Shown here: piece by piece, positions 6,855-55,971 of the stretch | Position numbering within the stretch: the stretch's first letter is position 1 | Layout of the letters: each line of letters begins with the position of its first letter | Source of the DNA: Octopus sinensis | Lineage: Eukaryota | Assembly (NCBI RefSeq): GCF_006345805.1 | Contig: NC_043026.1 | Coordinates: 12,813,579-12,877,578 of the forward strand | Direction of reading: 5' to 3' | DNA: 64,000 bases | Made by a program: the position numbers and the translations under genes | The notes under the pieces: model-generated | What the model was told of the DNA's origin: nothing | Databases searched by the model: none | The model's input: only the letters and a program-made list of their open reading frames with translations

Positions 6855-6907
<53 letters not shown>

Positions 6908-15437: not shown

Positions 15438-15462
15438 TTGGGTTTTTGTGTTCTTTGAAGAG

Positions 15463-30159: not shown

Positions 30160-31695
30160 GCTGGCAGAACAGTTAGCATGCTGGGCAAAATGCTTGGCAG
30201 CATTTTGGTTGTCTTTACGTTCTGAGTTCAAATATTGCCGATGTCAACTTCCATTCTTTCAGGGTCGATAAAATAAGTACCTTTCGAGTTCTGGGGTCGC
30301 TGTAATCAACTTACCTGCTCCCCTGAAACTGCTGACCTTGTGCTAAAATCTGAAGCCATTCTTATTATTATTAATATTATGATAACTCGTTTGCCGCTAC
30401 AGTCTGAGTTCAAATTCCACCAAGGTCGACTTTGCCTTTCTTCCTTTTGGGGTCAATTCAATAAGTACCAGTTACACACTGGAGTTGTGCAACTGGTACT
30501 TATTCCACCAAATTCCACAAGGTCGACTTTGCCTCTCATCCTTTTTTCTGATTGATAAAATAAGAACCAGTTAGGGGCTGGGTCTGATGTAATCAACTAG
30601 TCCCCTCACCCGAAATTTCAGGCCTTCTTCCTATAGTAAGAAAGGATTATTATTATTATTATTACTGTGACGAGCCGGCAGAATTATGTGGATGCAAAGC
30701 AGAATTTTGACCGTCTTTACATTCTGAGTTCAAATTCCACCAAGGTTGATTTCGCCTTTCATCCTTTTGGGATTGATAAATTAAGTTCTAGCTGAGTACT
30801 GGGGCCCCCTTCCTTGAAATTGCTGGCCTTGTGCCAAAATTCAAAATCAGTTTTATTATAATAGAAATATCGTAAAAAATAGGGATTTTCATAGAAGGCT
30901 AACAAACCTGCCATACACAGACAACTTCAGCTTTATATATAGAGAGATAATTAGGGTTCAGCTAACAGCTTCACCACATCCCGAAATTAGAAATGGGAGT
31001 TAAAAATTCCTTTTCTACTACTATGAGAATCTCCATGACGGTAAACATACTTTTTTACGAAGGCAAAGAGAAAGACAATGAATCAACATGACCAGAATTA
31101 ATTATATTCGTGTTTCGAGATTAAAGTAATTTGAATTTTACTTACTTCTCTCTTTAGTATAATATTTCCAATTTTTATACAATTTCAAAGTGCTATGACT
31201 GAATATGTACACAATCGAGCCTAATTATAATTATATGGATAATTTTACCTATAAAGGTAATTTTAACGTACCAATTGACTTGGTAAAATTGTTAATTAAT
31301 TGATTAATTAATTAATTAATTAAATTAGCGTGCTAGCGGGGTGCAAAGAGCACCATAAGAGTGTGGTCACTGACAGAGCGGCTAACCGGGTTCTTTGCCA
31401 GTGGCACATAAAAGGCACCATTCAAGTGTGATCGTTACCAGCGTCGGCTTACTGGCACTCGAGCCCCGTGCTAGTAGGGTGTTAAGGGCACCATCCGAGC
31501 ATGATCGTTGCCAGAGCGGCTATCTGGCCTCCATGCCGATGGCACGTAAAACACACCATTCGAGTGTGATCGTTACAGCATTGCCTTACTGGCACCTATA
31601 CCAGTGGCATGTGTAAAAGATTCGAGCGAGGTCATTGCCAGTACTGCCTGACTGGCCCCGTGCCAGTGGCACGTAAAAGCACCCACTACAGTTAG
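30160..31695 (+). mobile_element. Old degenerate SINE B pieces (30160-30860) and a truncated family C copy (31325-31695)
   Basis: Repeated CTGAGTTCAAATTCCACCAAGGTCGAC/GCCTTTCATCC motifs and GTGCCAGTGGCACGTAAAAGCACC units. Confidence 0.6.
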
Positions 31696-33009
31696 GTGCT
31701 GGGGTTGATGTAATCGACTAGACCCCACACCCAAAATTTCAGGCCTTGTGCCTATAGTAGAAAGGATTATTATTATTATTATTATCTTCAAATTATCACC
31801 AAAAAAAGATGGGGGCATGGCTGTAAGGTTAAGGAATTCACTTTGCAATCTTGTGGTTTCAGGTTCAGTCCCACTTTGCAGCACCTTAAAGAATTAATTT
31901 CTTCTAATGTTCCAGGTTGACTTAAGCCTTGTGAGTGGGTTTCGTACCTGGAACTGATAAAGCCTATGGTATATACATGTGGGTGTATATTCATGTATGC
32001 ATATCTACATTTGTACTTATGTGTGTATGCATTTATGTGTGTGTGTGTGTGTGCGTGCGTATGTCTGCTCATGTCTCCTTGTTTTGACATCTGCTGCTAA
32101 TTATAAACAAATGTCACGTCAAACAAACAGAGTCGTTTGTTTGCAGTGTTCCACCAGAAAACATATCCAACCATTGTGCTGTTCATGTTGGAAGAACTTG
32201 GGGAAATATTCTCTTGCTTGAAGCCAGCTGAAGATTGGTGACTCTCATCAAGTGTAGTCATAGACTTGACTGAGTGGAACTCACAAGAACCTGGCAAGAA
32301 ACAAAACAAAATTATTAGAAGGAAAATACAGAAAAAAAAATACACCACCTGATGTATTATAAAGGTTTTGACATCCATTTTCCCTAACTGGCATGGGTAG
32401 GACAGTTGACGAGGAAGCAGTGAACCAGAGGACATTGCTGAGCTCCAATGAAAGATTTGGCAAGATTTCTACAGCTGGATGATCTTCTTAACACCAGATA
32501 CACACATACACGTGTGTGTGTGTGTTTATGCGTGCATAAGAGTATATGAATGAATAAACATGGGTTTACTTATGTTTGATTGCACATCTGACTTTGTATG
32601 CTAGCATGGGTTAGATGAATATATTATTGTAGCCTTGTTTTACAGACAGACAGCCTTCCTATTGCTCACCCAAAACCATCTTGCAAGAACAAAAGTTCTT
32701 ATTTCCCATGTCTTCCAAGGTGGGGGTGATTGGTTGACAGATGTTTCTGCTTGGAGCAACTTAAAAGAGATTGCAAACATAAACAAATGCACAGACACCT
32801 ATGCGCACACACACTCAGCTCAAGTTCACTGCTTCCTGTAGCAGAAACAGCTGGAAGCTAATGAAGGTGTCTACGTAACTCTTGTTCTTTTGTCATTCAT
32901 TGATTCATAGCTATAAACATACATGGACACAAATATTTATACATGGGTATGTGAAGGTATATTCATATAGTTTCACACGTGCATTTATGTATATGTGTAT
33001 GTATGTATA

Positions 33010-34385
33010 TATCATCATCATGATCATTTAATGTCCTCTTTCCATGCTAGCATGGGTTGGGCTGATTGACTGAAGGCTGGTGAACCAGATGGTTGCACCA
33101 GGCTTCAATCTTGATCTGGCAGAGTTTCTACAGCTGGATGCTTTTCCTAACGCCAACCACTCTGAGAGTGTAGTGGGTGCTTTTACGTGTCACCGGCACG
33201 GGCCAGTCACGCGATACTGGTAATGACCTTGCTCAAATCTTTTACACGTGCCAGTAACGCAATGCTGGTAACTATCAAGCTCGAATCGCGACTTTTATGT
33301 GCCACTGGCACGGAAGCCGGTTAGCCACTCTGTCAACGATCACACTCGTATGGTGCTCTTTGCTCCTCGCTAGCACAGATGCCAGTCATCGGATTTGATT
33401 TTGATTTCACTTGCATCAACAGGTCTTCGCAAGCAGAGTTTTAGTGTCCAAAGAAGGAAAAGGTATGCATAAGTGGGCTGGTTACACCCCTTGCATAGAC
33501 CACGAGGTTATGTTCTCATGTGGCTTGCCGAGTCTTCTCATGAACGGCATATTTCCAAAAGTGTCTGTCACTAATTATTTCCTTGGTGAGGCCTAAAGTT
33601 CGAAGGTCATGCTTCACCACTTCATCCCAGGTTTTCTTGGGTCTACCTGTTCCACAGGTTCCCTCAACCGCTAGGGTGTGGCACTTTTTCACACAGCTAT
33701 CCTCATCCATTCTTGCAACATGACCATACCAGTGCAGTCGTCTTTTGCACACCCCATCTGCTGCTTCTTAGGTCCAACTTTTCTCTCAAGGTACTTACAC
33801 TCTGTGTCGAGTATGCACACTGACATTACACATCCATCGGTGCATACTGGTTTCATTCCTTGCGAGCTTACGCATGTCTTCAGCAGTCACAGCCCATGTT
33901 TCACTGCCATGTAGCATGGCTGTTCGTACACATGCAACATACGGTCTATCTTTTACTCTGAGTGAGAGGCCCTTTGTCACCAGCAGAGGTAAGAGCTCTC
34001 TGAACTTTGCCCAAGCTATTCTTATTCTAGCAGCTACACTTTCAGCGCACCCTCCCCTGCTACTGACTTGGTCACCTAGGTAATGGAAGCCATCAACTAC
34101 TTCTAGTTTTTCTCCCTGGAATGTGGCGGAAGTTGATCTCTGCACATTTTCAGTATTTATAGCTCCCGAGCATCTGTCACACACAAAAACTATCTTCCCA
34201 GTTAGCCTTCCTTTGATATTGCTGCACCTCTTATGTGTCCATAGCTTACACTGGGTACATCTTAGAGTTTCTACCTAAACCTCTACTACAGATCGAGCAG
34301 GGTCATCTACCTGAAGGGATTTGTGGTTTGGTTGCCTTCCCACTTATTAGGATTTTGGTTTTAGCTAGGTTGACTCTAAGGCCCT
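33010..34385 (-). mobile_element. 5'-truncated, disrupted RTE-clade LINE with a PHD-like insert; its 3' UTR is the family C sequence
   Basis: Translations include PCSIC...CTQCKLWTHKRC...CDRC, FHYLGD, AWAKFRELLP, HGSETW, RRLHWYGHVARM and GRPKKTW. Ends in the (ATG)n tail at 33010. Confidence 0.88.
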
Positions 34386-35944
34386 TTGATAATATATATA
34401 TATATATATATTAATATTTAGCAGAAGTAACAAAGTGACCCAAAATTCGAAAGTTTCGTTAATTAGCATTTATCAAACTGGTTCTTTGAAGGTATATTCC
34501 CAGACCTCCAAACACCACTTTGATGAGTGTCAATTCTTGGATCTTGAGTCCCTACTGTCACGCCCCTATCACCCCTACCTCTATCTTTCATCTCTCAATC
34601 ACTCTCTCTTCTTCTTTTTACTCTACTATCTTACTGCTGTGACAAAGATTGGCAGTAAATCTCTTCTCTTCACCATTCTTCCAATGCAACTAGGGATGTT
34701 ACTGGACCCACCTGAGTCTCTCCCCAAAACTCAGCCACTCCTTTTCATATATACATATATATGTATGTGTATCCTGAAGAAGGTCTCTTTTATTTTTCAT
34801 TCCTCCTGGGGTCAATAGAGTAACAGTCTATTGATCCCAGGAGGCGGTGGAGGATCATTCTGATGATGATGGGTCACCAGAATGTCATTAAACACCCCCA
34901 CCAATATTTCCTAATCCACCTCATTGAACCCCCAATACTTCATAATAAACTACACCAAGTTATAACTCCTCACCTAATACAACACAAAACACACTTCACC
35001 TGCCAAACCCCTTTTTCATACAAACACATCTTTCTCATTGCTACCCAAACATCGTCTCTGAAATTAAATATAATTAAGAAGAACCTACCTTTCATTAATT
35101 GGGCTTATTCATTAACCAATCTTTATGATCTCAATCAGCGACAAATAATAACGATCCTCTCAACATGCTGTCTATCAGTGTGATTATATGAAAGCCCATC
35201 TTTGGATAAGCTTTCCGAGTTAATCAATGTTGTGTATGATAATTGTGTGGATTATATTGAAATGTCGAGAGATTTACAGCATTTGTCAGGTTAAGAACAG
35301 TTTCATCTCCAGCTTTATTGGTATCTGTAAATCCAGGTAAATATGATGGAAACCAAGCCAACCATGACTGTCCCATCATTTTCAGTACATATAATCATTA
35401 GTAATACTTATATTCCATCTAACTAGCAAAATGTTCAGTCTGTCTTGTATCTGACAAATGTCTATGAAACATAATAAAGTCTATGTTTTGCTAATTGTTC
35501 CATGTTAACGAAGTTTGAACATGATTGCTGTGTGTTGGGACATAATATAGCATGTATACCAATTAAAGTTAATTTTCTCTACAGCTTAGAGTGTCTCGTT
35601 ATTGAGTGCTTTTGGAACAGGGGAATCTCTTTGACTAATTATCGTTAAATAAATCTAAGCCACACATGACTATTTCTTTGTGATGTTGAGAGCAAATATC
35701 ATTTCCAGTGAAAATAATTATTTCTAATATTTCGACTCCATGTAATTAATGAAACTTATTAATACATCTTAGAATAGATTGTAATAAGTTGTTTAAATAT
35801 TAATTAGACAAGATTAATTCCCTGACAGAAATACATAAATGTTTTGTTTGTGTTTTTCAAATGATGAAGCAAACATCATCTCCCTGAAACTTTAATATTT
35901 TCACAAAGCTAAATGTTTTCCTTATATTTCTTTACAGATTCACT

Positions 35945-38900
35945 ATGGAAGACCAGACTGAAAATACTTTAAGGAAACTTATGCCTCAGAAATGGGCTTT
36001 GAGTTACTCAACACCAAAATGGGATGAAGAAGGAGTTGACAATAAAAGGGGTAAATACGAGGAAGATGATGGTTCAAGGAGAAGTGATGAAGGATATTGT
36101 AGTGTTAGTTCAGAGAGAGAATCAGCAGTGAAGGCCATATCTGTGGCAAGACTCAACACACATGGAGACAAAGAAAGCACAAAAGAAACTGAAAAACAAA
36201 TAGTTGCTAAAATACAGAGGATTCGTCTTCAATATGATCGCTGCATGATGTTTATGGAGCATATAGTTAAGGAGAGCAAACATTATGAAAGTCTGGGGTT
36301 AAGTGCCAATTGTATTTTAGAAAAGGTCAAAGAGAGACTTGGAATTTTGCTGAAATATACTAAAGAACAGAATATTTCTATTGAGCAGGACCTCGAATGG
36401 TTTCAACAAAGACTCTTTGACATTTATGTCACCTGTAACCCATACAACCACAAGACCATTGAACCAGCAAAAGTAACCACAAAATTTCGGCCGCTTCAGC
36501 CAGTTGTGACCAGAGAAGCAAATATTGAGGAATCTGGAGAAGAATTTGAAGAAATCCCAATAATATCCAATATTGTCATCATAGAGGAGGGAGTGATGAC
36601 ATATTCCCACCTTTGTAAGATAATAAGTTTAGTAACAAGAGACAGTGACAGAATTGATGTCCATTGTCCATCTTCTGTGACCAGTTTCACAAGAATCAGT
36701 GAAGACATGGTTCTGGCAACCCTCCCATTCCAAGAAATGATTCTTATTATCAGCCCCAAAACCTTCAAGATCAAAAGGATACAGTTGGGGTTACATATGG
36801 TGAGTTACTTGGAAGATTCTACACTTATAGGTGTAGAAATGTTTGGTAAGACAGTTTACCAATTTGATTGGGAGGATAATACCATAAACTATCAATTTAT
36901 TACCAAAGAAACCCCTACAGATATTGCTGTAGGGGTCCAGAATATACTTGTAATTACATTCGCCAGCATCAACAGAGTAATCTGTTACAAACTGGATGGC
37001 CAACAGTTATGGGAGGTAGAGACCCATTCTCTGCACCTCCCAAGTAAAATCTCTCTCTACCAAAATTATTTCTATGTCCTCCAGGGACAAATAATTTATA
37101 GGATTTCAGCTAAAGGTGGTGTAACAAGGAGGGACATTGGCAGGAAATGCCGCTCTATTTCTGTTGGTAAAGATACCATTTTGGTTACAGATTATTGCAG
37201 CAAACCACATGGTATTCAAATGAGTAAAGACTTTTGGCCCAAACTGTCATACAACCACCAGCTACATACCCCCAGTTTAAAAGACTATATTGATATTGAG
37301 AATTGCTACAACATTACAAATATTCTACCTATGTCTACATCTTCTATATTAATAATTTACAAAAACAAGAAAGCTAAATTATTCACTGATAACGGGGAAA
37401 TAATTAACCAAAATAATTCAGTTTTCCTTGAGCTTCCTTCTTTCTGTTGTAGAATAAACGCAAACAGATTCCTGGTATTTTATCGTGAAAAGAAAGGATT
37501 TCAGTATATCACCTGTCCTGAACTAAGAAAAGGCTCTTTAATAAAGGTGCAAACTGATTACATGAAAATATGTCATATTGTATCAAATAAGTGTCTGGCT
37601 GTGACCACAACTGAAAACAAAAGCGAGGTCCATATCCTCTTGATCAACGAAGATAAAGTTGACATTGCAGAAAGAATTTCTCTGGGACATCATAATGTCA
37701 GCATTGCTGCAACTCCAATTAATTTTGTAGTCGTAGATGGAAACGAAAATAAAATGGTATTTTATTCCACATGTGGTGAAGAACTTTTTCAAAAATACCT
37801 TCCATTCTATGGCTACCCTCATCACATCTACTCTGATAATGTTTATTTCTATGTCCTCTTCAGGAGACACTCTATTCTCATATGTTACGATCTACATGGA
37901 CAAATAAAATGGCAGTGGGAACTGCCTTTCCCTGTTCACCCTCACATTGCTGTTTTCCAAGGAACTCTTTATGTCCCAGACACTCAACTCAACAGGGTTC
38001 TTCTTTACAAGTATCAAGACCGGTCGTCTGCCTGCCTTTTACCCATTAAAAATCCTTATATCAGAAATCTAAATCTACGTCTCAAAGAAAAGGAGAATGA
38101 CCAAAAACTTGTCATTGGCGAAATATGTAATCTGGCCAATGGACAGTTGGTGGTATCTGACATCAACCATGATTGCTTGTTGTACATTTCTGAGGAAGGA
38201 GACATTGTGTCCAGATTATCTCTGCCGTCTACAGCCACAGATATATGTCGATGGGATTCTAATCATATAGGGGTCACATTACCCCTACAGAAACAATTAA
38301 GGGTCATTGGAAACCTATCAAAGAGAGTGAGAAGTGTATCATTAAGGCAGCCTTATGTACGGATGTGTAAGATGGGTGAAGGTGAAATTATTTGTTATTG
38401 TGATAAACCATCACATTTAGACATTTTAGCCATCAATTATTATAATCAAGTCGAAGTAATTAAGACAATTAATATCCCTGTGTTTGTGAAATCATTATCA
38501 ATAGACAAGAAAACAGAAAAGCTATTAATTGTTACTAGGGAAAAAGCTTTTCAGTACAACACTAGAATAGGTGGTGGTGGTCATGGCGGTGATGGTAGTA
38601 TTAGTAGTAGTGATGGTATGGTTTCCAGTGATTCAGAGACCAAAACAGAAGCTTTCTTCAAGGACATTAGTGGTGGTGGTCATGGCGGTCATCAGATGGT
38701 CCCCAGTGTTTTAATGTCCCAAGTGAAACGTCCCCTCAGTCTCCAAGGTGGATCTATTGACCAAACGTCTGTTTATCTGATAGACAGAAGCCGTATGTTT
38801 GCAATAAACGATCAGAACTTGTTGGTTACTGATCTCGTTACTAATAATCAACTTAATTATTATATCGACCTGGTGGATGTATTTTCCAGAAACATTTCTC

Positions 38901-41497
38901 TCAGTGAAATGTTGTCTTCCATTTTATATCTACAGGACCTGACAGTTTCTGATAAAGCCAGACGTATTCCTCTCCCTAAACATTTGGGAGACGAAGAACC
39001 AACGGATATTAATCGTTTGGTTCTTACTGAAAATAATCTGATTGCAGGATGTGACTGGGAGAATGGAAACATTAAGATATTCACATTGGATGGTCACCTT
39101 ATGGATTCAATCAAAGTGAATGTTAATTTTGATATTAAAATGTGTCGATGGCAGTCAAACACACTGGTCATTACGAGTTGGGATTATTTTGATGATAATA
39201 CACACCAACTGTTGACATTAAAAGTGGAGTTTCCATTGTCGTTGGTAATTTACAAAACGAGAAATAATTATAATTGTGTGGCTTCTTTATCAAACAATCA
39301 ACTGGTTTTGAGTGAATGGAGAGATGAAAGACATTTGCATTTTGTTGATATTGATGAAATACATTCGAGTGTGAAGGAAATAAAAAAAATAGACATACCT
39401 GAACCATTAATAAGAAGAGACAAAGATGGAGATTATTCTGGTAGAATCCTGGATATTAAAGTTACTGATGAAGATGTCATCATTGTCTTAAACAGGAGAT
39501 TCATCATTTTCTTCAACAGAGGTGGTCAATATTTACATTCAGTCAGACACTACATGAAGTGTTTTGATGTTGACAGGATGACAATTGATGACAGTTTTTT
39601 GTACATTTATGGTCGGTGGGAGAAATGTTTTTATTCATTTGGATATCAAAGCATTTTGTGTTTGACCCAGAAAGGGGAATACGAGAGAATATTTTTAAAT
39701 GAAAGAATTTATAAAGATGAATTAGATTTCACCAGTATAAACTGTAAAGGACCAAGGTTTGTTGGAAGCTCCGAAAGGAGAGAGAGTGAATTGTATGTTG
39801 AAGGGTTGTTTATGGTGAATCGAGACAGCTTCCCGGTTGCTCGTTTACAAACAGACGAATGTCCTGTTCAAGTGAAAGATTTTGATGTCTCTGAGGAAGG
39901 AAAGACAGTTGTGTGTGAAAAAGCCAATAATGGAAATGTTAAAATATTCGATGAAGACGGCCAGTTGCTATGTCACAGAAATGTTGCAAGTTTAGTTGGT
40001 GGTGTGTGTTTTACACAAGAATCACACATAATGGCCACGGTTCCTAAAAGGAAAGAAATATTTCATCTGAATGGAGAAGATTTGCAGACATCTCAAGTTT
40101 GGTCGAGTCTCATCCCTTATGGTGTAATATGGAGAAAAGTGGCGGGTATTTACTGGTGTGTACATAATGAATTGATTGAATGTCATTGCATAAAGATTGA
40201 TGGGGACCAAGTGAACATTCTGGAATCTGTGTCGTCATTAAATCTTGATTCTGGTCTTCGTTTCCCTTCCATTACATCTGAAACGAACAAGGAAATATTC
40301 AGTAATGAATTAATTAATAAATTGGAATACAGAGGAGGAGATGGAGATGGAGGAGGAAGAAGAAGAGGTAAATCAGGTGAAATAATTGGTAAAGGTAGAT
40401 TAAAGGTGAGATGTGGTAATTACATAGCGGAGATTAATAATTCAGGAATTGATGAAATATCAGTGAGGAGACTTCCATATAGGACAGCAATGGTCCCTTT
40501 TTCCATTCCTGCATTCGAGGAACCTGTTGATTATGATTTGTGGGACATTAGGGACCGGAACAGTAAACTAATTAAGTTAGATGAGAATGTGAGTGTGTTG
40601 ATGTTTCGAGAAAGTGTCACATTAATCAGAACAACAACAACAACAACAGTGGACATACTTCAACATGAACAACAACAACGACCACCACTGGACATATGTC
40701 GGTGGACAGAGGAACGTTTCATTGTCGCCTTTGGGAGAGAAATGAGGGTCTTCAACAGGGATCTCCGTCGTTTAAAAACCATCAGTACTGAGAAATACTA
40801 CAACAGGATTTATAAATACAACGACAATCAACTCGTGTGTGGTGGTCATTATATTAGAGACATAACTCAAGAAGAGAGACACGAGAAATACAAAAGAATG
40901 TGGGAGAACAACAATTTTTACTATTATTGCGATGACCCCGACATCTTTGACCCTTATTATGTGGATGTGGTTGATATCAAAGATGGGAAATATAAAGATG
41001 AAGTGTGTCGTGGGAAGATGGGGAGATGTGGAAGGTTGGAGGGAGATGAAGGGGTGTGGGGTGTGGGAGTCACATCTTTTGGTGATGTTTTTGTTGTGAG
41101 GAGGGAGATGAAGAAGGAGGGGGATGGAATTTGGGAAGATTTTTGTTTTGTGGAATGGTTCAGGGAAAAGTCTTTGGTGAGGAGGATAAGAATAGATGAA
41201 CCGTTTTATGATCTGGAATATTGTATTCCAAGACCTCGTCTGACCATAATTGGTGAATGTGTTTATATAACAGATTTAGAGAACAATATTTACGAAATAC
41301 CTCGACATATTGAAGAGGAAACATCTGAAGATGATGAAATCCTGGAATTAAAAGATAATCCAAAATATTTACTCCTCAGAAAGGAGGATAATGAAGTCTC
41401 TGAAGTTCTTGGTTTGGATGTTTCAGACAATTCTTTGATGGTTTTTGGAATTATTCCTGGACGTCAATCTTTTGCTTTCTTTTATTTTGACAAATAA
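35945..41497 (+). CDS. 1850-aa protein: acidic N-terminus, predicted coiled coil, about six tandem NHL-like beta-propeller domains
   Basis: Uninterrupted 5.55-kb ORF in AT-rich DNA. Acceptor TTTCTTTACAG at 35936-35937 just before the ATG. Blade-like motifs (GQLVVSD, ENGNIKIFTLDG, GNVKIFDEDG, TPTDIAV) and a six-fold recurring P.D.CRW....I.VT-like signature. Confidence 0.85.
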   Translation: MEDQTENTLRKLMPQKWALSYSTPKWDEEGVDNKRGKYEEDDGSRRSDEGYCSVSSERESAVKAISVARLNTHGDKESTKETEKQIVAKIQRIRLQYDRCMMFMEHIVKESKHYESLGLSANCILEKVKERLGILLKYTKEQNISIEQDLEWFQQRLFDIYVTCNPYNHKTIEPAKVTTKFRPLQPVVTREANIEESGEEFEEIPIISNIVIIEEGVMTYSHLCKIISLVTRDSDRIDVHCPSSVTSFTRISEDMVLATLPFQEMILIISPKTFKIKRIQLGLHMVSYLEDSTLIGVEMFGKTVYQFDWEDNTINYQFITKETPTDIAVGVQNILVITFASINRVICYKLDGQQLWEVETHSLHLPSKISLYQNYFYVLQGQIIYRISAKGGVTRRDIGRKCRSISVGKDTILVTDYCSKPHGIQMSKDFWPKLSYNHQLHTPSLKDYIDIENCYNITNILPMSTSSILIIYKNKKAKLFTDNGEIINQNNSVFLELPSFCCRINANRFLVFYREKKGFQYITCPELRKGSLIKVQTDYMKICHIVSNKCLAVTTTENKSEVHILLINEDKVDIAERISLGHHNVSIAATPINFVVVDGNENKMVFYSTCGEELFQKYLPFYGYPHHIYSDNVYFYVLFRRHSILICYDLHGQIKWQWELPFPVHPHIAVFQGTLYVPDTQLNRVLLYKYQDRSSACLLPIKNPYIRNLNLRLKEKENDQKLVIGEICNLANGQLVVSDINHDCLLYISEEGDIVSRLSLPSTATDICRWDSNHIGVTLPLQKQLRVIGNLSKRVRSVSLRQPYVRMCKMGEGEIICYCDKPSHLDILAINYYNQVEVIKTINIPVFVKSLSIDKKTEKLLIVTREKAFQYNTRIGGGGHGGDGSISSSDGMVSSDSETKTEAFFKDISGGGHGGHQMVPSVLMSQVKRPLSLQGGSIDQTSVYLIDRSRMFAINDQNLLVTDLVTNNQLNYYIDLVDVFSRNISLSEMLSSILYLQDLTVSDKARRIPLPKHLGDEEPTDINRLVLTENNLIAGCDWENGNIKIFTLDGHLMDSIKVNVNFDIKMCRWQSNTLVITSWDYFDDNTHQLLTLKVEFPLSLVIYKTRNNYNCVASLSNNQLVLSEWRDERHLHFVDIDEIHSSVKEIKKIDIPEPLIRRDKDGDYSGRILDIKVTDEDVIIVLNRRFIIFFNRGGQYLHSVRHYMKCFDVDRMTIDDSFLYIYGRWEKCFYSFGYQSILCLTQKGEYERIFLNERIYKDELDFTSINCKGPRFVGSSERRESELYVEGLFMVNRDSFPVARLQTDECPVQVKDFDVSEEGKTVVCEKANNGNVKIFDEDGQLLCHRNVASLVGGVCFTQESHIMATVPKRKEIFHLNGEDLQTSQVWSSLIPYGVIWRKVAGIYWCVHNELIECHCIKIDGDQVNILESVSSLNLDSGLRFPSITSETNKEIFSNELINKLEYRGGDGDGGGRRRGKSGEIIGKGRLKVRCGNYIAEINNSGIDEISVRRLPYRTAMVPFSIPAFEEPVDYDLWDIRDRNSKLIKLDENVSVLMFRESVTLIRTTTTTTVDILQHEQQQRPPLDICRWTEERFIVAFGREMRVFNRDLRRLKTISTEKYYNRIYKYNDNQLVCGGHYIRDITQEERHEKYKRMWENNNFYYYCDDPDIFDPYYVDVVDIKDGKYKDEVCRGKMGRCGRLEGDEGVWGVGVTSFGDVFVVRREMKKEGDGIWEDFCFVEWFREKSLVRRIRIDEPFYDLEYCIPRPRLTIIGECVYITDLENNIYEIPRHIEEETSEDDEILELKDNPKYLLLRKEDNEVSEVLGLDVSDNSLMVFGIIPGRQSFAFFYFDK

Positions 41498-41765
41498 ATA
41501 TTTCCAGAAATATTAAACTTCAATCTTCTTCTTCTTCTTATTATTATTGTTGTTGTTGTTGTTGTAAATGGCTTCGCACGGGAATCGAACCTGCATCGCA
41601 TACATTGCATTCTACACACTAACACTTATTGTTGTAACATTCCTCAACACTCTCTCTTTGTGTGTGTGTGTATATCTATATACAGTATATATACATGTGT
41701 TTATATATATATACACACATATTTAGGAATGTATGTATAGAAGTAAGGCTATAAGTATGTATGTT

Positions 41766-41814
<49 letters not shown>

Positions 41815-41889
41815 GCATGCATGTATGTATAGGAATGTCTGGTCCGAAAGCAGAGACTTTCATAATCATTGATTCTCCATTAAAAGGCA

Positions 41890-42045
41890 GACGACCACCA
41901 CCGCCGTCGTGGTCGTGGCCGTCTCCGCCGTCGTGGTCGTCGTGGTGGTCGTCGTCGTCGTCGTCGTCGTCGTCATCATCATCATCGTCATCATCATCAT
42001 CGTCGCCATCATCGTCATCATCATCATCATCATCGTCGTCATCAG
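41890..42045. repeat. (CGT/GGT/CAT)n trinucleotide microsatellite
   Basis: Directly visible; a shorter paralog lies at 56010-56080. Confidence 0.9.
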
Positions 42046-42224
42046 CGTTGTGTGTGCGTGTGTGCAGTCTGCATCTGACAGTTTTTAACGTTTAATAAGA
42101 ATAGATTGTTGTTGTTGTTGTTGTTGCAGTGACATTCCAACTGCACACACACACAAACATTGCCTTTCGTCCTCGTAGGGTTGTTGTTGTTGTTGTTGCT
42201 GTTGGGGGTTCATAAAAAAAGAGA

Positions 42225-42560
42225 AGGACACTTTAAGAAGCATTCAGTAAAAGCTTTCCCATAACTGGTCATTTTTCATGCTAGAAATAGAAACCACTTT
42301 ACTTTTCATATAAAATTTGAAGGACAGCTAAGAAGCATTCATTTCATGCTAGAAAGAGCCACCTAAACCTTCACATTTTTGTTTCATCACAAATAAAAAT
42401 TGAAAGACAATTTTCAAAGCATCCATGTCAAATATTGTCCTATAGATGGCCTAACATCATGCTAGAAATAACAGCCAAATACTCTGAAATTTGTATCGTT
42501 TTTCATCAAAAAAGTGAAGGACACTTTAAGAAGCAACTCTAAAGATATTGTCCTGTGGCG
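42225..42560. repeat. Dispersed internally repetitive element (family E); paralog at about 56250-56620
   Basis: Recurring GAAGGACACTTTAAGAAGCA and CATGCTAGAAATA(A/G)CAGCCAAAT blocks. Confidence 0.55.
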
Positions 42561-42699
42561 GTTTAAGTGTAAAATATTATAAAAGTATGCATCTATGAGT
42601 TTTATGTGTTTAAAAAACATAGCAAAGACATGTGTGTATATGTAGGTATATATAAATATACATGTGTATAAATGTTCCTTGATGATGTATATGCTTCTT

Positions 42700-43830
42700 C
42701 CCTAATAACTTGCAGAGAAATGGATATTTTTCATGGAATTTCCTACAAATATGCTTCAGATGGTGTAGATTCCGATTCTATGGGGATTTATTGGAAAAAC
42801 CTTTTTCTTTCAGGGACAAACGGTTTTCCCAACTTGTAACTGGAGATGAAAAACAGATGTGTATGAAAACGCAATGCAAAAATGTTACTGGAGCTGGAAT
42901 AAAGTCCCCCAAACAACAACCAAGGACGAATATCCATGCAAAATAAAAAGAAAAAAAGTTATGCTTTGTGTTTGGTAGGATCATCATCATCATCGTCATC
43001 ATTATCATCGTTTAACGTCCGTTTTCCATGCTAGCATGGGTTGAACGGTTCAACTGGGGTCTGGGAAGCCAGGAGGCTGCGCCAGGCTCCAGTCTGATCT
43101 GGCAGTGTTTCTACGGCTGGATGCCCTTCCTAACGCCAGCCACTCCGAGAGTGTAGTGGGTGCTTTTTATGTGCCACCTGCACAGGTGCCAGACAAGGCT
43201 GGCAAACGGCCACGATCGGATGGTGCTTTTTACGTACCACCAGCACGGGGGGGGGGGGGGGGGCCAGACGGGGCTGGCAACGGCCACGATCGGATGGTTC
43301 TCTTACGTGTCACCAGTACTGGTATCTCAGCTACAATTTCCATTAATGTTGAGAGATTTCGATTTCGACTTTCACTTTTATTTGATTTGATCATAAACGA
43401 TTTGATTTATTATGAGCTTCTCCCACAAAACCAGACAATTAATTCTGAAGTGTATTGCTATCAGCTGGCTAACTTGCAAATAATAAAAAAAAAATCAAAG
43501 AATTGAGGCTGAAGATTGGACAACAGGAAAGAGTGGTAGAGTTGCAACAAAACAATGCCTGACCTCATGTCTTTGGCCACCGGAACAAAGCTACATGAAC
43601 TTGTCCGGGATCTCTTAACCCCTCAACCATATTCTTCTGATATTGCACCATCCGACTACCACTTGTTCTTGTCTCTACAGAACTCATCACAAGGGAAAAC
43701 ATTTAACCATTTGAATGGAATCAAAATGCATCTAAATGATATTTTGTCTTTGAAATTATTCAAATTTTATACTGATGGAATATTTAAATTGCCTAATAGA
43801 TGGGAAAGGGTCGTTAATAATTAAGGGAAA
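42700..43830 (+). mobile_element. Degenerate mariner (DD34D) transposase, split by a family C insertion at about 42980-43390
   Basis: LVTGDEK, KVMLCVW, YELLPQNQTINSEVYCYQL, PYSSDIAPSDYHLFLSLQN and FYTDGIFKLPNRWERVV. Confidence 0.88.
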
Positions 43831-43879
43831 TTACTTCGCTGAATATAATATATTGAAAGGTCAATAATTTACATCCATT

Positions 43880-44265
43880 GCTCTTTATTCTTTTACTTGT
43901 TTCAGTCATTTGACTGCGGCCATGCTGGAGCACCGCCTTTAGTCGAGCAAATCGATCCCGGGACTTATTCTTTGTAAGCCCAGTACTTATTCTATCAGTC
44001 ACTTTTTGCTGAACCACTAAGTGACAGGGACGTAAACACACCAGCATCGGTTGTCAAGCAATGCTAGGGGTACAAACACACGCATATATATATATATATA
44101 TACGACAGGCTTCTTTCAGTTTCCGTCTACCAAATCCACTCACAAGGCTTTGGTCGGCCTGAGGCTATAGTAGAAGACACTTGCCCAAGGTGCCACGCAG
44201 TGTGACTGAACCCGGAACCATGTGGTTGGTTAGCAAGCTAGTTACCACACAGCCACTCCTGCGCC
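43880..44265 (-). mobile_element. SINE family A
   Basis: Full-length match to the reverse complement of 17401-17822. Confidence 0.85.
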
Positions 44266-44609
44266 ATTGTTGCATATTAAAAAAACCCTCAGAACATTCC
44301 AGACAATATAATTCTTTTATTCGTCACTAAATTGATAGACATTCAGAGAAGGGCATTGAGCAAGGCTTCAATAAATAGGAGGGAACAGGTGAGAACCTAA
44401 ACCTGGTCAACTCCTACCTGCATACCAAATACATCAAAGTACTCATTGTTAAGTCTCACCAGCCATTCATCTCCTAGCTTTTGCAGCAGCTACCATATAA
44501 GGGAGTGAGTCTCCCAGCCAAACGCTTCCTCTGGGGTCCAGATAAGTCCATTCTTTACCAGAGAATGACTTTGCATTCACAATTATATCAACCACCTCAC
44601 CAACAACAA

Positions 44610-44960
44610 CACTGAACACCTTTTTGATCTCCATGTGTCCAACACATGTGGACATGCCTACAAAGTCAGAAAACAACACAGCTCCCATGACTTTCGGAAA
44701 CATATTTTCACTCTCAGAGTTGCTGAAGCATGGAACAAACTGCCTGCGTCAGTTGTTGACTGCCATGATACTGCATCTTTTAAGGCCCTCATGCTTTCCG
44801 AAATCCGCCGAAACTACACCTGATTGCCCCCCTTCCATACTCATACACATATGTGTGTCATGACTCATGCACTGTTCTTTTCCTGACGCTTGTACATTAC
44901 CCTATGTACTACACATACACTTTAGATGAGTTGTAGTGCACCTGAGTACACAATGTTTTA
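44610..44960 (+). mobile_element. CR1/L2-group LINE 3' end, same family as 11380-11808
   Basis: CGHAYKVRKQHSSHDFRKHIFTLRVAEAWNKLPASVVDC. Confidence 0.8.
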
Positions 44961-45567
44961 TTATTATTATTTTACTATGACTATCCTGCTTCCTGGTGAG
45001 AATGTAGTCAATCTGGTTTGTGTGCCACAAGATTCATAGGTGATCATATGGCTGGTGGGCTCCCCCAAAATCTGAAGTTAGCATGACAAAATCAGAGTGG
45101 GGTTGAAAATGATCAGAATATCCTCCAAAAAGTTTCTCAGTTTCATGAAGGTAATTTTCATCTGGACCCCTAAAAGCATATCTCTGCAGAGTTTAAAGAA
45201 AATACCAAGGAATCAATCTGGTGTGGGGCACTAAACTATACTTATGCCTTATGTTCTTCCTTCGTGGTCTCTTCTATTTTGTACTTGGGGTCATTATTTA
45301 TTTGACAACTTTACAATATTGCAGTGTATGAAAAGCATTTGAAAGCAAATAAGCAGTAGATATACTGCAAAGGATGCAGTATTCAAGAAAGAACAAGGTG
45401 TGTGGTTGTTAGGAGGAAGTGGTTTGATATAGAGGTCCATAAATTGCAGAAAGGGAAAAGGTTAAATAAAAAACCCGAAAGAAATCTAAGTTTTGAAAAT
45501 GCTTTAATTTCAATTGCACAGAGCAGAAGATCATTAAAGATAAACAGCAAACAAAAAATTGTGGAAG

Positions 45568-47403
45568 CTAGCTCTTTCCTTTCTCCCCTGTGTGAATAAA
45601 ATTGTGCTTAGTTAAGTGAATTTTTTGAGAGAATGATTTACCACAGATATCACACTGATATGATTTCTCTCCTGTATGAATAAATTTGTGCCTAGTTAAG
45701 TGACTTTTTTGAGAGAATGATTTACCACAGATATCACACTGATATGGTTTCTCTCCAGTATAAATAACACATTTGTGTTTCTTGAAGCTACTACTATGAG
45801 AGAACGATTTACCACAGATATCACAATGATAGGGTTTCTCTCCTGTATGAACACGTATGTGGTCAGTTAAGTGAATACTTTGAGAAAATACTTTACCACA
45901 GATATCACAATGATATGGTTTCAACCCAATATGAAGGCGTTTGTGTTTTATCAAGTTACTATTATAAGAGAATGATTTACCACAGACGTCACAATCATAT
46001 GGTTTCTCTCCTGTATGAATATGTTTGTGTTCCGTTAAGCTAATATTTCGAGAGAATGATTTACCACAGACATCACAACGATATGGTTTCTCTCCTGTAT
46101 GAATATGCTTGTGTTCTGTTAAGCGAATACTTTGAGAGAATGATTTACCACAGACATCACAACGATATGGTTTCTCTCCTGTGTGAATACGAATGTGTTT
46201 AATTAAGATAACTTTTTGAGAGAATGATTTATCGCAAATATCACACTGATATGGTTTCTCTCCTGTATGAACACGTTTGTGTATAGTTAAGGCACCATTC
46301 TGAGAGAATGGTTTACCGCAGATATCACACTGATATGGCTTCTCTCCTGTATGAGTACGTTTGTGAGCAGTAACACTACCACGGTTAGTGAATGATTTAT
46401 CACAAATATCACAGTCATTTGGTTTCTCTCCTGAATGAATAGGTTTAGTTCCATCAATATTTGCTGTGTATGAGTTACCACAAATATCGAAGTGATATGG
46501 TCTCTCTCCTGTATGAGTACGTTTGTGTTTAGATAAGGTACCACTTTCAGGGAATGATTTACCACAGATATCACAGTGAAATGGTTTTTCACCTGTATGT
46601 GTACGTTTGTGTCTAGCTAAAACACTATTTGAAGAGAATGCTTTACCACAGATATCACAGTGATATGGTCTCTCTCCTGTATGAACACGCTTGTGTATAA
46701 TTAAGGCACGATTATGACAATACGATACACCACAGATATCACACTGATATGGTTTCTCTCCTGTGTGAGTACGATTGTGCTTTGTTAAGGCAGTATTTTC
46801 AGAGAATGATTTACTACAGATAACACACTGATATGGTTTCTCTCCCGTGTGAATACGTACGTGTGTAGATAAGTGAGCACTTTGAGAGAATGATTTACCA
46901 CAGATGTCACAATGATATGGTTTCTCACCTGTATGAATAAGTTTGTGACCAGTTAAGTGACCACTTTGAGAGAAAGATTTACCACAGACATCACAGTGAT
47001 ATGGCTTTTCTCCTGTATGAACGCGTTGGTGTGTAGTTAAGTGATTAGTCTGAGAGAATGATTTACCACAGATATCACAATGACATGGTTTCTCTTCTGT
47101 ATGAATACGTTTATGTCTAGTAAAGATACTAATATGAGAAAAGGATTTGCCACATATATCACAACGATATGGTGTCTCTCCTGTATGAATATATTTGTGT
47201 TTCATTAAGCTACTATTTTGACAGAATGATTTACCACAGACATCACAGTGATATGGTTTATCTCCTGTATGAATACGTTTGTGCCTAAGAAGGTCACTTT
47301 CTTGAGAAAAGGACTTTGTACAAATATCACAGTCATATGATATCATCTTTTTCATCATGTCTTCTAAGGATATCAATTCTACAATATTCTCTCTCTCTTC
47401 CAT
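45568..47403 (-). CDS. C2H2 zinc-finger protein (ZNF4 here), 21 finger units (2 degenerate)
   Basis: 611-aa ORF. Predicted upstream acceptor GTTTCTTTATAATTTCAG at 47761-47760. Confidence 0.93.
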
Positions 47404-48229
47404 TATTTATCCTCTCAGATCCCAGTTTATATATTTTCCTTGCTTTTGTTCGTATGCTTTATTTTTTCAAATATTTCTTTGGCTGAATCTCTGTCCAGTG
47501 TTACCTTTCTTTAGCAACACTTCCATAAATTAAATCCAACTTCAATCAGCAAACAGGTTCCTCTTCTTCACACTCCAGTCAGGGAGGGTCACAAATTTCG
47601 CTAATAATATTATGTCAAAGCAAATGTTTCACAGGAATTCTTCCACGTATTTGTAGAAACAATCTGATACATCTGTTTCATGGAATAATTTCGTTTAGTC
47701 TTTAAAACACGGGAGATATTGAGGATGATTCTTCTGTTGTGTCAATGTCATCTGATGTCCTGAAATTATAAAGAAACAACAGCGTAAGATGGTAGAGGCT
47801 ACTTAAAAAATACAGAAATACGGAAAAAAAATACAAAATAAATAGTTTAAAAACTGTATATAATAAGATTAAATGGTACTTCGTGGGAGAGGGGATCCTG
47901 CTGCTATTTCATTCGTTTCATGTGGGTTTTTTTTGGTCCCCACTGTGGTGTTGTGCCTGTCGTTTTACTGCCCACTCTATTGTTTTATAACTATTTCTGG
48001 GCAATGGTAAAGTGAGCGCACACCACCGAACCGGACCCAGAACCTAGCCATAAACCTTAAGAGGGTGCACCATAAAAACACAATCAGGAATTTACCTGAA
48101 TGGTAAAAGCAAATTACCTCCCCTTGTACGGTCCCACACATTCCTCTTTCTATTCGCGGGAACCCGAGTTAGGGGGTCTTTAAATGGATGAATCTTCCTA
48201 ATTTTTTGCACACACCGTTTATTTTGTAT

Positions 48230-49080: not shown

Positions 49081-49175
49081 TAATTAAAAGCAGTCTTCGT
49101 CACCTTACATTGCCCCTCGCCAACTCCATATCCTTAAGATTTAGTGCCTCTATGTTGGCATTGTACTTAAGTACT

Positions 49176-50155
49176 GCAGAAATAGCAGCCAAATCTCGCA
49201 TTAATCATAGAACCTTTCAGTCACTGCTAGAAATAGCAGCCAAATCTCGCATTAATCATAGAACCTTTCAGTCACTGCTAGAAATAGCAGCCAAATCTCG
49301 CATTAATCATAGAATCTTTCAGTCACTGCTAGAAATAGCAGCCAAATCTCGCATTAATCATAGAATCTTTCAGTCACTGCTAGAAATAGCAGCCAAATCT
49401 CGCATTAATGATAGAATCTTTCAGTCACTGCTAGAAATAGCAGCCAAATCTCGCATTAATCATAGAATCTTTCAGTCACTGCTAGAAATAGCAGCCAAAT
49501 CTCGCATTAATCATAGAATCTTTCAGTCACAGCTACAAATATATTTCTTTACCCACAAGGAGCTAAACACAGAGGGGACAAACAAGGACAGACATAGGTA
49601 TTAAGTCGATTACATCGACCCCAGTGCGTAACTGGTACTTAATTTATTGAACCCGAAAGGATGAAAGGTAAAGTCGACCTCGGCGGAATTTGAACTCAGA
49701 ACGAAATACCTATTTCTTTATTACCCACTAGAAATAGCAGCCAAATCACACACAGATCATGGAATCTCTCTTCTATAGCTAGAAATAGCAGCCAAATCAC
49801 ACAGATCATGGAATCTCTCTTCTATAGCTAGAAATAGCAGCCAAATCACACACAGACCATAGTCTCTCTTCTATAGCTAGAAATAGCAGCCAAATCACAT
49901 ACAGATCAGGGAATCTCTCTTCCATAGCTAGAAATAGCAGCCAAGTCACACACAGATCATGTAATCTCTCTTCTATAGCTAGAAATAGCAGCCAAATCAC
50001 ACACAGACCATAGAGTCTCTCTTCCATAGCTAGAAATAGCAGCGAAATCATACATAGATCATAGAATCGCTCTTCCATAGCTAGAAATAGCAGCCAAATC
50101 ACACACAGATCATGGAATCTCTGTTATATAGCTAGAAATAGCAGCCAAATCCCGC
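49176..50155. repeat. Two related 51-bp minisatellite arrays (7 and about 8 units) separated by a minus-strand SINE B
   Basis: Units GCTAGAAATAGCAGCCAAATCTCGCATTAATCATAGAA... and AGCTAGAAATAGCAGCCAAATCACACACAGATCATAGAA... Confidence 0.93.
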
Positions 50156-50267
50156 ACAAATCAGGGACATCTCTCGTTCATAAAACACAGAAGAGACACA
50201 AAGAATCGAGGCGCCAAAGACCGAAAGTCTACAGAATTAAAAACAATGAAAATCTTCTTTGCTTAAT

Positions 50268-50560: not shown

Positions 50561-50630
50561 CACTTCTATAATCCTTTCGGTCCATTCTTTGCCATCTTCA
50601 CCCAAATTATTTCATCTTGGTCGAGATGTT

Positions 50631-51546: not shown

Positions 51547-51920
51547 TTTCATTGACTCATTCTCTGAAAGCAATGTTTTAACTAAACCTGCTTTCATTGA
51601 TATGAAAACGTAATTATATAAATGTGACACTTCATAACAACAACTTTAACAGGCATTTTAAACTTCGCCTGAATTCAGGTCAGTGTTGTAGGTTTTAGCC
51701 ACAGCAACAATTAATCCATTCGTTTCTATGACAGAGTCTTCACGCCAATGCTGTTGTAGTGTCTACAAAGGCATTTGTCAATTGTTTGTGTATATTTAAT
51801 ACAAATCTGCAGCTTTCTCAATTATATCATGAAAAGCAATTTTGGTGAACGTAGTCCAGCACAAACAGCTATCAAGAGTGAAAGACGGGGAGGATTAGAA
51901 GGTGGTATATTTATTCGATA

Positions 51921-55145: not shown

Positions 55146-55376
55146 TATTTTTCCTCTCAAATCCCAGTTTATATATTTTCCTTGCTTTTGTTTGTATGCT
55201 TAATTTTTTACAAATATTTCTTTGGCTGAATTTCTGTCCAGTGTTACCTTTCTTTAGCAACACTTCCATAAATTAAATCCAACTTCAATCAGCAAACAGG
55301 TTCCTCTTCTTCACACTCCAGTCAGGGAGGTTCACAAATTTCACTGATAATATTATGTCAAAGCAAATGTTTCACA

Positions 55377-55971
55377 GGAGATCAACAAGGATTACTATTA
55401 TTGCAAAGACCCAGACATCTTTGACCCTTATTATGTGGATGTGGTTGATATCGAAGATGGGAAATGTAAAGATGAAGTGTGTCGTGGGAAGATGAGGAGA
55501 TTGGGAAGGTTGGAAGGAGTGGATGATGTGGGAGTCACATCTTTTGGTGATGTTTTTGTTTTGAGGAGGGTGATGAAGTTGGAGGAGTGCTTTGAAGGGT
55601 GGGAAGTTTTTTGTTTTGTGGAATGGTTCAGGGAAAAGTCTTTGGTGAGGAAGATAAGAATAGAAGGAGGAATAATTTTTGGTCTGGAACATTATCATAT
55701 TGCAAGACCTCGTCTGACCATAATTGGTGAATGTGTTTAGATAACAGATTTAGAGAACAATATTTACGAAATACCTCGACATATTGAAGAGGAAACATCT
55801 GAAGATGATGAAATCCTGGGATATAAAGATAATTCAAAATATTTACTCCTCAGAGGGGATGATAATGAAGTCTTTGAAGTTCTTGGTTTGGATGTTTCAG
55901 ACAATTCTTTGATGGTTTTTGGAATTATTCCTGGACATCAATCTTTTGCATTCTTTTATTTTGACAAATAA
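55377..55971 (+). pseudogene. Duplicated 3' fragment (about 197 codons) of the 1850-aa gene
   Basis: Homologous to 40903-41497. No 5' part; TAT changed to TAG at 55738-55740. Confidence 0.9.

Follow-up and report, generated by a model that had tools for sequence, protein, structure and literature searches.

What does an uninterrupted 5.5-kb open reading frame (ORF) encode when it lies among C2H2 zinc-finger (ZNF) genes, and from what did it arise? The question is raised by a stretch of 64,000 nucleotides from Octopus sinensis (contig NC_043026.1, positions 12,813,579 to 12,877,578 of the forward strand; hereafter, the window), in which positions 35945-41497 of the plus strand form an ORF of 1850 codons followed by a TAA stop, in a DNA context with a G+C content of ~37%. 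An initial annotation, made from the sequence alone, described the ORF as a single-exon gene for a giant protein with six tandem NHL-like beta-propellers. The single open frame was confirmed. The evidence below points to a protein of six units derived from the NHL propeller of molluscan TRIM-NHL proteins and belonging to a family found only in octopods, in which two of the units diversify among recent paralogs.

Six related units in one protein

The propeller count of the initial annotation rested on a signature that recurs six times. All six occurrences are present (Table 1), each 2 to 4 residues from the positions first noted (aa 243, 497, 763, 1063, 1350, and 1580), and within each unit the signature falls on strands A and B of blade two. 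Comparison of the window protein with itself by BLASTP detected no internal repeat, and the repeats are therefore very diverged and visible to profile-profile methods only. When profiles built from a shallow alignment were compared, the signatures were in register (offset 0) in 9 of the 15 top pairwise alignments of the six segments, designated U1 to U6; N-terminal and linker controls scored ~0.1% in the same comparison. A deeper alignment (A5) allowed hhalign to join the units into a connected network, with 81% for U1-U2, 92% for U2-U3, 95% for U2-U4, 89% for U2-U6, 90% for U3-U4, 95% for U3-U6, 93% for U4-U5, and 91% for U4-U6. The N-terminal and linker segments, compared with everything in the same way, reached at most 0.9%. 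By this measure, the six units are homologous to one another.

The fold was predicted with AlphaFold2 for two overlapping halves of the protein, modelled on 28-sequence alignments, and blade counts and loop faces were derived from the DSSP strings of the models together with the NHL motif register. A disordered start and helices at aa 55-164 are followed by stacked all-beta domains of short strands at aa 209-430 and 448-689 (predicted local distance difference test [pLDDT] values of 72-88), 710-872 (~60), 1006-1286 (70-92), 1331-1430 (~50-68), and 1493-1849 (up to 93). The 23 strands of U1, 24 of U2, and 23-24 of U4 are consistent with six four-stranded blades, and the counts for U3, U5, and U6 were ~15-18, 9, and ~29, respectively. 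As modelled, U1, U2, U4, and U6 would be full six-bladed propellers, and U3 and U5 would be short units of ~3-4 blades, each followed by a G-rich low-complexity linker. hhalign aligned U5 to the first ~3.5 blades of U4. The idea of one propeller per signature thus holds for the four units with ~23-29 strands but not for U3 and U5.

Foldseek searches of the PDB with both halves retrieved only multi-propeller proteins (IFT-A, LRP4/LRP2, Utp21, and DDB1; E values of 1e-21 to 1e-11). Against a viral library, the best single-domain superposition was with an 'NHL repeat containing protein' (target-normalised TM 0.69, root-mean-square deviation 4.7 Å). The PDB searched with the single window-protein sequence gave no direct match, and Pfam identified no domain in the window protein, RING and B-box included. 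Nor was a signal peptide or a transmembrane segment found in it (maximum Kyte-Doolittle value, 1.52), in agreement with the absences listed in the initial annotation. Only 4 Cys and 4 His residues lie within aa 1-204.

Descent from the TRIM-NHL propeller

The origin of the units was sought by an exhaustive hidden Markov model (HMM) search, with a profile of aa 200-1290, of 1.84 billion cluster representatives. Only 31 proteins were returned, and the matches outside the family were molluscan RING/B-box/NHL proteins, matched in their propellers. The five weakest significant matches (E values of 1e-6 to 8e-4 for the whole library) were one cuttlefish, two bivalve, and two further proteins. Pfam domains of these outgroups were RING, B-box, and NHL (29 bits) in P0061 (Acanthosepion [Sepia] pharaonis CAE1315789.1), B-box and NHL in P0060, RING and B-box in the bivalve protein P0062, and weak NHL matches in P0063, an NHL-like protein of the bivalve Mytilus, and in P0064. 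By hhalign, the family profile matched P0061 at 96% (E = 3.6e-9) over 277 columns, which make up the whole propeller, and P0060 at 90%. In the P0061 alignment, KMCRWQSNTLVIT of the family is paired with GICLWANYEVVVTLP, the equivalent strand pair of the signature. Taken unit by unit, U1 matched P0063 (93%), U3 matched P0060 (95%), and U4, U5, and U6 matched P0061 (97% with E = 4e-11, 85%, and 85.5%, respectively); U2 reached only 33% against the outgroup NHL proteins. Profile comparison thus ties the units both to each other and to NHL propellers.

Solved structures gave the same direction. The top 12 matches of the A5 family profile in the PDB were all NHL domains (TRIM71 with E = 8e-4, then TRIM2, Brat, TRIM3, and Thin), with the classic blade motif, carried by the initial blades of U3, U4, and U5, as the matching segment. 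An initial PDB profile search, with the shallow alignment, had returned NHL matches only, none of them significant. At the level of domain models, the window protein did not match PF01436 (Pfam NHL, gathering score 20 bits) even at E ≤ 10, and none of 20 family members matched Pfam NHL at E ≤ 1; the divergent octopus paralog P0043 scored 18.5 bits (cut-off 20). WD40 and YWTD (Ldl_recept_b) models gave only sporadic sub-threshold matches of the WD type in a few members.

The remaining parts of a TRIM protein were not found. No RING or B-box model matched the window protein, the 20 family members, P0038, P0040, or P0043, whereas the outgroups P0060 to P0062 carry the B-box. The helical segment that the initial annotation placed before the propellers is predicted, but no homology to the TRIM coiled coil was detected: hhalign gave 0.1-0.2% for the N-terminal helices against the coiled-coil regions of P0060 to P0063. 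With homologous propellers, no RING or B-box, and a helical N terminus not detectably related to the TRIM coiled coil, the family is, on these profile comparisons, derived from the molluscan TRIM-NHL propeller but outside the TRIM-NHL class. The HMM search, the hhalign match to P0061, the PDB profile search, and Foldseek all support the earlier description of a highly diverged multi-propeller derivative.

An octopod family with one amplified lineage

A word-indexed search of 5.8 billion proteins identified 37 relatives, 46-91% identical, all from O. vulgaris, O. sinensis, and O. bimaculoides. Their records are all of the 'uncharacterized protein LOC...' type without a gene name, and no paper describing the family turned up when the literature was searched by gene ID and keyword, consistent with the earlier remark that this is not a named gene. 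About 21 of the 37 are located on one 29.2-Mb O. vulgaris chromosome, OX597841.1. P0038 and P0043 represent two lineages that each of the three Octopus species carries once, on large chromosomes, with 91-94% identity of the conserved paralogs between O. vulgaris and O. bimaculoides. The window gene belongs to a third lineage, amplified mostly on one chromosome and comprising at least 23 gene models on a single chromosome of O. vulgaris. It differs from O. vulgaris paralogs by a synonymous divergence (dS) of ~0.03-0.05. Intact ORFs of 1674-1870 codons are present at nine loci, the window included. U3 is the most conserved portion across the family.

Argonauta hians contributes two family members, 1913 and 1925 aa long. 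Full-length identity among the three Octopus lineages and Argonauta is 28-36%, and the six-unit architecture therefore predates the split between Octopus and Argonauta. A search with the most divergent member, P0043, added one more octopod-like sequence and no multi-propeller homolog from squid, cuttlefish, other decapodiforms, or nautilus. As far as these sequence searches reach, the family is found only in octopods (Octopus and Argonauta), where it comprises two conserved single-copy lineages and one amplified clade. Both NHL propellers and fast-evolving TRIM families are familiar; what appears to be undescribed is a chain of six NHL-derived units that has no tripartite motif, is confined to octopods, and combines constant with hypervariable propellers.

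Selection differs among units

Selection was surveyed on the nine intact coding sequences (CDSs), which were codon aligned and compared pairwise, region by region, for the ratio of nonsynonymous to synonymous divergence (dN/dS, or omega) by the method of Nei and Gojobori. Distant comparisons, with O. bimaculoides P0021 or conserved P0038, gave omega values of 0.15-0.8 in every unit. Among six recent paralogs (the window gene and those at loci L001 and L005 to L008), every pair had an omega of 1.2-4.3 in U4 and U6; if a few outliers with low counts are set aside, the values for U1, U3, U5, and the linker were 0.1-0.6. U2 was intermediate (0.25-0.9, or 0.38-1.1 after gap filtering). After columns within four positions of a gap were dropped, omega was 1.25-3.2 in U4 and 1.1-4.5 in U6. 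When three disjoint pairs were pooled, nonsynonymous and synonymous differences (Nd/Sd) numbered 216/32 in U4 and U6 versus 126.5/79.5 elsewhere (Fisher p = 2e-10); U4 and U6 were above the neutral expectation (p = 0.0013), and the remainder was below it (p = 5e-9). U5 is nearly invariant among the recent paralogs, with 9 of its 180 sites varying.

Within U4, 41% of non-strand sites are variable versus 20% of strand sites. With strands labelled A to D by the NHL motif register, the share of sites showing at least three residues was highest in the B-C loops (44%) and D-A loops (31%), lower in the A-B loops (12%) and in strands (7%), and nil in the C-D loops (0%). It is the B-C and D-A loops that make up the 'top' face, which is the ligand side of propellers, NHL domains included. 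The difference between top and bottom loops in U4 corresponds to an odds ratio of 7.8 (p = 2.5e-4). Such module-specific diversifying selection would fit a recognition role, such as that of the RNA or pathogen sensor raised as a possibility in the initial annotation.

Synonymous divergence is itself a mosaic. In the same gene pairs, dS was 0.01-0.07 in U2 to U6 yet ~0.7 in the N terminus and/or U1, and the copy in L004 has diverged in U4 and U6 (dS of 0.24-0.4) but not in U2, U3, or U5. The mosaic therefore indicates gene conversion or module exchange. Two deeply diverged types of N terminus, with differing upstream sequence, were distinguished, one beginning MEKINEENK (L005, L006, and L007) and the other MEDQTENT (window, L001, L004, and L008); the type of U1 is not always linked to that of the N terminus, as seen in L007.

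Gene structure and surroundings of the locus

The claim of a single exon stands for the CDS but probably not for the transcript. Single-exon CDSs are also found in P0021, P0038, P0005, P0006, and P0003. A conserved polypyrimidine tract and AG end 8 nucleotides before the ATG (Table 1), so an upstream noncoding exon, and with it an intron in the 5' untranslated region, is likely. The ~57 nucleotides 5' of the putative acceptor are kept among MEDQ-type paralogs, including that of O. bimaculoides. A donor-like sequence is present where the initial annotation proposed a candidate donor, near 35337. Gene models P0002, P0015, and P0004 include coding exons 11-40 kb upstream; the window shows no conservation of these exons, and we treated them as unverified annotation. 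In the O. vulgaris models P0001, P0004, and P0010, the propeller gene is joined to exons of neighboring ZNF genes or to a transposase-like DUF4371 domain, or the predicted protein extends to as much as 2526 aa; such models are probably chimeric predictions that span tandem neighbors.

The ZNF cluster noted at the outset is real, with six C2H2 arrays around the gene within the window. Co-location of paralogs with ZNF genes was only partly borne out. A ZNF ORF lies 3.8 kb from the L006 paralog and 36 kb from the L008 paralog, but none was found within 10 kb at L001, L004, L005, and L007 (four of the seven other expanded-clade loci) or at L003, a locus on another chromosome and the sole conserved-paralog locus examined for ZNF neighbors.

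Table 1. Features of the window (amino acid positions refer to the giant protein)
Feature	Position	Strand	Details
Complete CDS of the giant multi-propeller protein, within one exon	35945..41497	+	Open frame; homologous single-exon CDSs at L002, L003, and L005-L007
N-terminal region, aa 1-204	35945..36556	+	AlphaFold2: disordered acidic/basic stretch, then four helices; two diverged paralog types
U1, aa 205-440	36557..37264	+	Predicted six-bladed; pLDDT 75-87; signature at aa 247
U2, aa 441-700	37265..38044	+	Predicted six-bladed; pLDDT 72-88; signature at aa 500
U3, aa 701-880	38045..38584	+	Predicted ~3-4 blades; NHL-type blade NGQLVVSDINHDCLLYIS; signature at aa 766
Linker, aa 881-1000	38585..38944	+	G-rich low-complexity loop, three strands, two helices; without similarity to the units
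U4, aa 1001-1290	38945..39814	+	Predicted six-bladed; NHL-type blade LIAGCDWENGNIKIFTLDGHLM; signature at aa 1065; hypervariable
U5, aa 1291-1470	39815..40354	+	Predicted short unit; NHL-type blade EEGKTVVCEKANNGNVKIFDEDGQLLC; signature at aa 1353; ends in GGDGDGGGRRRG linker
U6, aa 1471-1850	40355..41494	+	Predicted large propeller, extended by long inserted hairpins; pLDDT up to 93; signature at aa 1583; hypervariable
Putative 3' splice site	35915..35937	+	Polypyrimidine tract and AG, TTTTCCTTATATTTCTTTACAG; conserved; acceptor in O. vulgaris model P0002
Candidate donor-like site	35335..35343	+	CCAG/GTAAAT, present in the sequence
C2H2 ZNF array	1938-3548	-	
C2H2 ZNF array	5052-6419	+	
C2H2 ZNF array	15424-16242	+	
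Nearest C2H2 ZNF gene	45568..47403	-	19 fingers; 4 kb downstream of the giant gene and co-duplicated with its 3' end
C2H2 ZNF array	53793-55160	-	
C2H2 ZNF array	56882-58582	-	
Recent segmental duplication unit shared with O. vulgaris loci	31689..42812	+	Match to L001 starts at 31689 and that to the L004 minus-strand copy at 34771; common end at 42812
Pseudogenised 3' remnant of a second family copy	55378..55968	+	aa 1654-1850, 80% identity, in-frame stop; block duplication

The recent copies of the gene arose by segmental duplication. The duplication unit is collinear with L001 at 88-97% nucleotide identity, and its portion from 34771 onward is collinear with the frameshifted minus-strand copy in L004, located 12 Mb away on the same chromosome. 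A further block, 40903-47999, comprises the 3' end of the giant gene (~200 codons), the flank that follows, and the minus-strand ZNF gene; it is repeated at 55377-59179 with 83-89% identity and internal deletions. The ZNF-rich chromosome appears to give rise to segmental duplications in general, with families other than the ZNFs carried along. At L004, the close paralog (2618-10518, minus strand; 91-96% nucleotide identity) is broken into four pieces by reading frame, and the annotation gives only a 411-aa gene there; the copy is a pseudogene, or else the assembly is in error. It lies head-to-head with the putative 5' exon of the P0015 gene model. No long terminal repeat (LTR) or terminal inverted repeat (TIR) flanks the giant gene.

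Repeats of several kinds were also observed. Immediately 3' of the stop codon, at 41567-41605, AATGGCTTCGCACGGGAATCGAACCTGCATCGCA resembles the reverse complement of a tRNA 3' half (T-arm and acceptor); ARAGORN identified no tRNA gene there, and the sequence is probably a short interspersed element (SINE) or a tRNA-derived fragment. Tandem arrays of a 180- to 217-bp unit with a tRNA-like T-arm motif, GAGTTCAAATTCCGCCGAGGTCGAC, at 7645-8444, 50624-51552, and 62483-63624 are probably a tRNA-derived SINE in tandem. Tandem repeats of 51 bp (7-15 copies, 88-100% identity) occur at 49173-50175 and 60947-62005, each beside a 184-bp array, and this pairing suggests a larger duplicated block with a period of ~11.7 kb in the right part of the window. 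A 57-bp satellite (18280-23143; ~85 copies, 96% identity, 27-30% GC, GC skew of +0.26 to +0.31) gives rise to spurious ORFs of 240-905 aa on both strands, and dispersed repeats of ~380-420 bp (for example, 43881-44265) occur many times in the window and in the O. vulgaris loci. Outside the window, a 946-aa ORF at L001 31505-34342 is the ORF2 (endonuclease and reverse transcriptase) of a long interspersed element (LINE), 4 kb 3' of the O. vulgaris paralog and outside the shared block, and multi-frame ORFs at 4375-7081 of L002, an O. bimaculoides locus with 7301 N, probably reflect a run of N.

Proposed function and alternatives

We read the family as a RING-less multivalent recognition scaffold, probably acting in defence, and regard this reading as a whole as moderately probable. 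Confidence is high for its structural and evolutionary part, and the defence function is put forward tentatively. The protein is soluble and intracellular. Six NHL-derived propeller units on one chain without a ligase module would form a multivalent binding scaffold in the cytosol, on which the constant propellers (U2, U3, and U5) may hold a conserved partner or effector and the variable propellers (U4 and U6) may recognize fast-changing ligands, most plausibly viral or other parasitic RNA or protein. The N terminus and U1 diversify as discrete types. In the expanded lineage, segmental duplication has amplified the copies and gene conversion reshuffles them. The whole would be an innate-defence or genome-defence recognition family that evolves like TRIM5/finTRIM-type genes.

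A fuller version of this proposal is rather doubtful. It would see in the family a germline-encoded, modular, variable recognition system of octopods, with the six NHL-derived propellers serving as an antiviral or anti-transposon sensor repertoire. Constant propellers would dock an effector, and the two hypervariable propellers, together with exchangeable cassettes of N terminus and U1, would have been diversified over ~25 tandem paralogs by positive selection and gene conversion. Its role might then be comparable to that of the TRIM5/finTRIM or NLR repertoires, with a fold and an architecture new to such use.

Several points weigh against the recognition scaffold. The mean pLDDT of the AlphaFold2 models is only 62-63, with U3 and U5 modelled at low confidence, and Pfam gives no NHL match for the window protein. 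Few single pairs are individually significant for omega >1, dN/dS was calculated pairwise on recombining paralogs, and the three 'disjoint' pairs may share history. An omega of 1 or more could come partly from relaxed constraint, and frameshifted and truncated copies exist. Finally, we infer function from evolutionary mode and ancestry alone, and nonimmune recognition systems are also under diversifying selection.

Those copies are the starting point for one alternative, that the family is decaying or drifting neutrally: recent segmental duplicates would be heading for pseudogenisation, and a high dN/dS would signify relaxed constraint only. Whole-gene omega between the closest copies is 0.85-1.2, most single-pair tests for omega >1 are not significant, one copy is frameshifted (L004), and a truncated remnant with a stop codon lies in the window itself, all as decay would predict. 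However, nine loci keep ORFs of 1674-1870 codons open in AT-rich DNA, and purifying selection on U1, U3, U5, and the linker (the pooled p = 5e-9) means that constraint on the genes persists; replacements are in excess only in two modules and in particular loop classes, and this excess goes beyond neutrality when pooled (p = 0.0013). We consider decay distinctly improbable. A conventional post-transcriptional regulator, in the manner of Brat and LIN-41, is unlikely but deserves more weight. Its propellers would bind endogenous mRNAs, possibly neural ones, and the expansion would be regulatory diversification. Ancestry in TRIM-NHL propellers, whose solved relatives TRIM71 and Brat bind RNA, favors this idea, as do the two slow-evolving single-copy lineages, which resemble genes with housekeeping or developmental roles. 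Lineage-specific expansions in Octopus, such as that of the C2H2 ZNFs, have also been tied to the nervous system (PMC12513265). For a regulator of endogenous targets, however, it would be unusual to see pseudogenised copies, concerted evolution, and an omega >1 concentrated on top-face loops in two propellers.

The setting of the gene suggests two further explanations. The protein could be a cofactor that co-evolves with the neighboring KRAB-less C2H2 ZNF proteins, analogous to TRIM28/KAP1 for KRAB-ZNFs: six ZNF genes occupy the 64-kb window, one block duplication copied the 3' end of the gene along with the adjacent ZNF gene, ZNF ORFs occur near the L006 and L008 paralogs, and one O. vulgaris model fuses the two genes. 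This evidence is purely positional, however, and L001, L004, L005, L007, and L003 have no ZNF ORF within 10 kb; co-location is expected of any two families amplified by the same segmental duplications. TRIM28 binds KRAB through its RING-B-box-coiled-coil (RBCC) module. The octopus family has no RBCC module, and its N terminus shows no similarity to the TRIM coiled coil, so we judge a ZNF cofactor very unlikely. The other explanation, a gene of a transposable element or endogenous virus, draws on the many copies, the intronless CDS, the DUF4371-fused O. vulgaris gene model, and the LINE ORF2 near the L001 copy. We rejected such an origin as extremely improbable. Pfam identified neither a reverse transcriptase, integrase, or transposase domain nor one for a capsid, and neither an LTR nor a TIR was found beside the gene. 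Copies occur as tandem or segmental blocks of 8-11 kb whose ends differ, not as one defined, dispersed unit, and each of the three Octopus species has conserved single-copy paralogs on other chromosomes. Host TRIM-NHL genes are the closest relatives, the LINE is outside the homologous block, and the matches in the viral structure library are generic propellers.

Innate immunity and genome defence in cephalopods are poorly understood, and the known octopus-specific expansions are mainly of protocadherins, C2H2 ZNFs, and G protein-coupled receptors. To these, the analysis adds an undescribed, octopod-restricted family that has six NHL-derived propellers per chain and lacks an E3 module. Constant and hypervariable propellers, diversification of top-face loops, and concerted evolution give it a clear evolutionary signature that can be tested. 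Should the variable propellers be recognition surfaces, the family would represent a new variable repertoire of innate receptors built by domain duplication, and it would offer a natural system for studying how NHL propellers shift ligand specificity.

Comparison with known systems

The closest likeness is to molluscan proteins of the TRIM-NHL type, represented by the cuttlefish protein P0061 and the bivalve proteins P0062 and P0063. They share a homologous propeller with the octopus family (hhalign 96-97% over ~210-280 columns), and the signature strand pair (xCRW....hhVTLP) is at the same place in the cuttlefish protein (GICLWANYEVVVTLP) and in P0060. They differ in architecture: the TRIM-NHL-type proteins are 420-660 aa long, with one propeller and a RING and/or B-box, whereas the octopus proteins have six units, neither of these domains, and a helical N terminus not detectably related to theirs. 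The solved NHL domains of TRIM71/LIN-41, TRIM2, TRIM3, Brat, and Thin have in common with the family the blade motif hhVaD..N.rIqvF...G.hh, which is recognizable in the first blades of U3, U4, and U5, and, for the units modelled as full, the predicted six-bladed propeller. Brat and LIN-41 bind RNA. Sequence similarity to the solved domains is marginal (best E = 8e-4), as is also evident from the missing Pfam NHL match of the window protein.

Multi-propeller scaffolds, such as DDB1, the YWTD arrays of LRP4/LRP2, and the tandem WD40 domains of IFT-A and Utp21, are the best overall structural matches and likewise carry several propellers per chain. They have no sequence relationship with the family, and the match is one of architecture, not ancestry. 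WD40-type propellers are seven-bladed, and YWTD arrays are extracellular with EGF spacers. In evolutionary mode, the octopus family is like the rapidly evolving TRIM restriction factors, namely, primate TRIM5 and TRIM22 and the fish finTRIM genes, with tandem amplification, pseudogenes, and diversifying selection on surface loops of the C-terminal recognition domain (compare PMC3845644 and PMC2533329). The restriction factors present a B30.2/SPRY domain on an RBCC effector, whereas the octopus proteins present an NHL-derived recognition domain six times over, on a chain with no ligase module.

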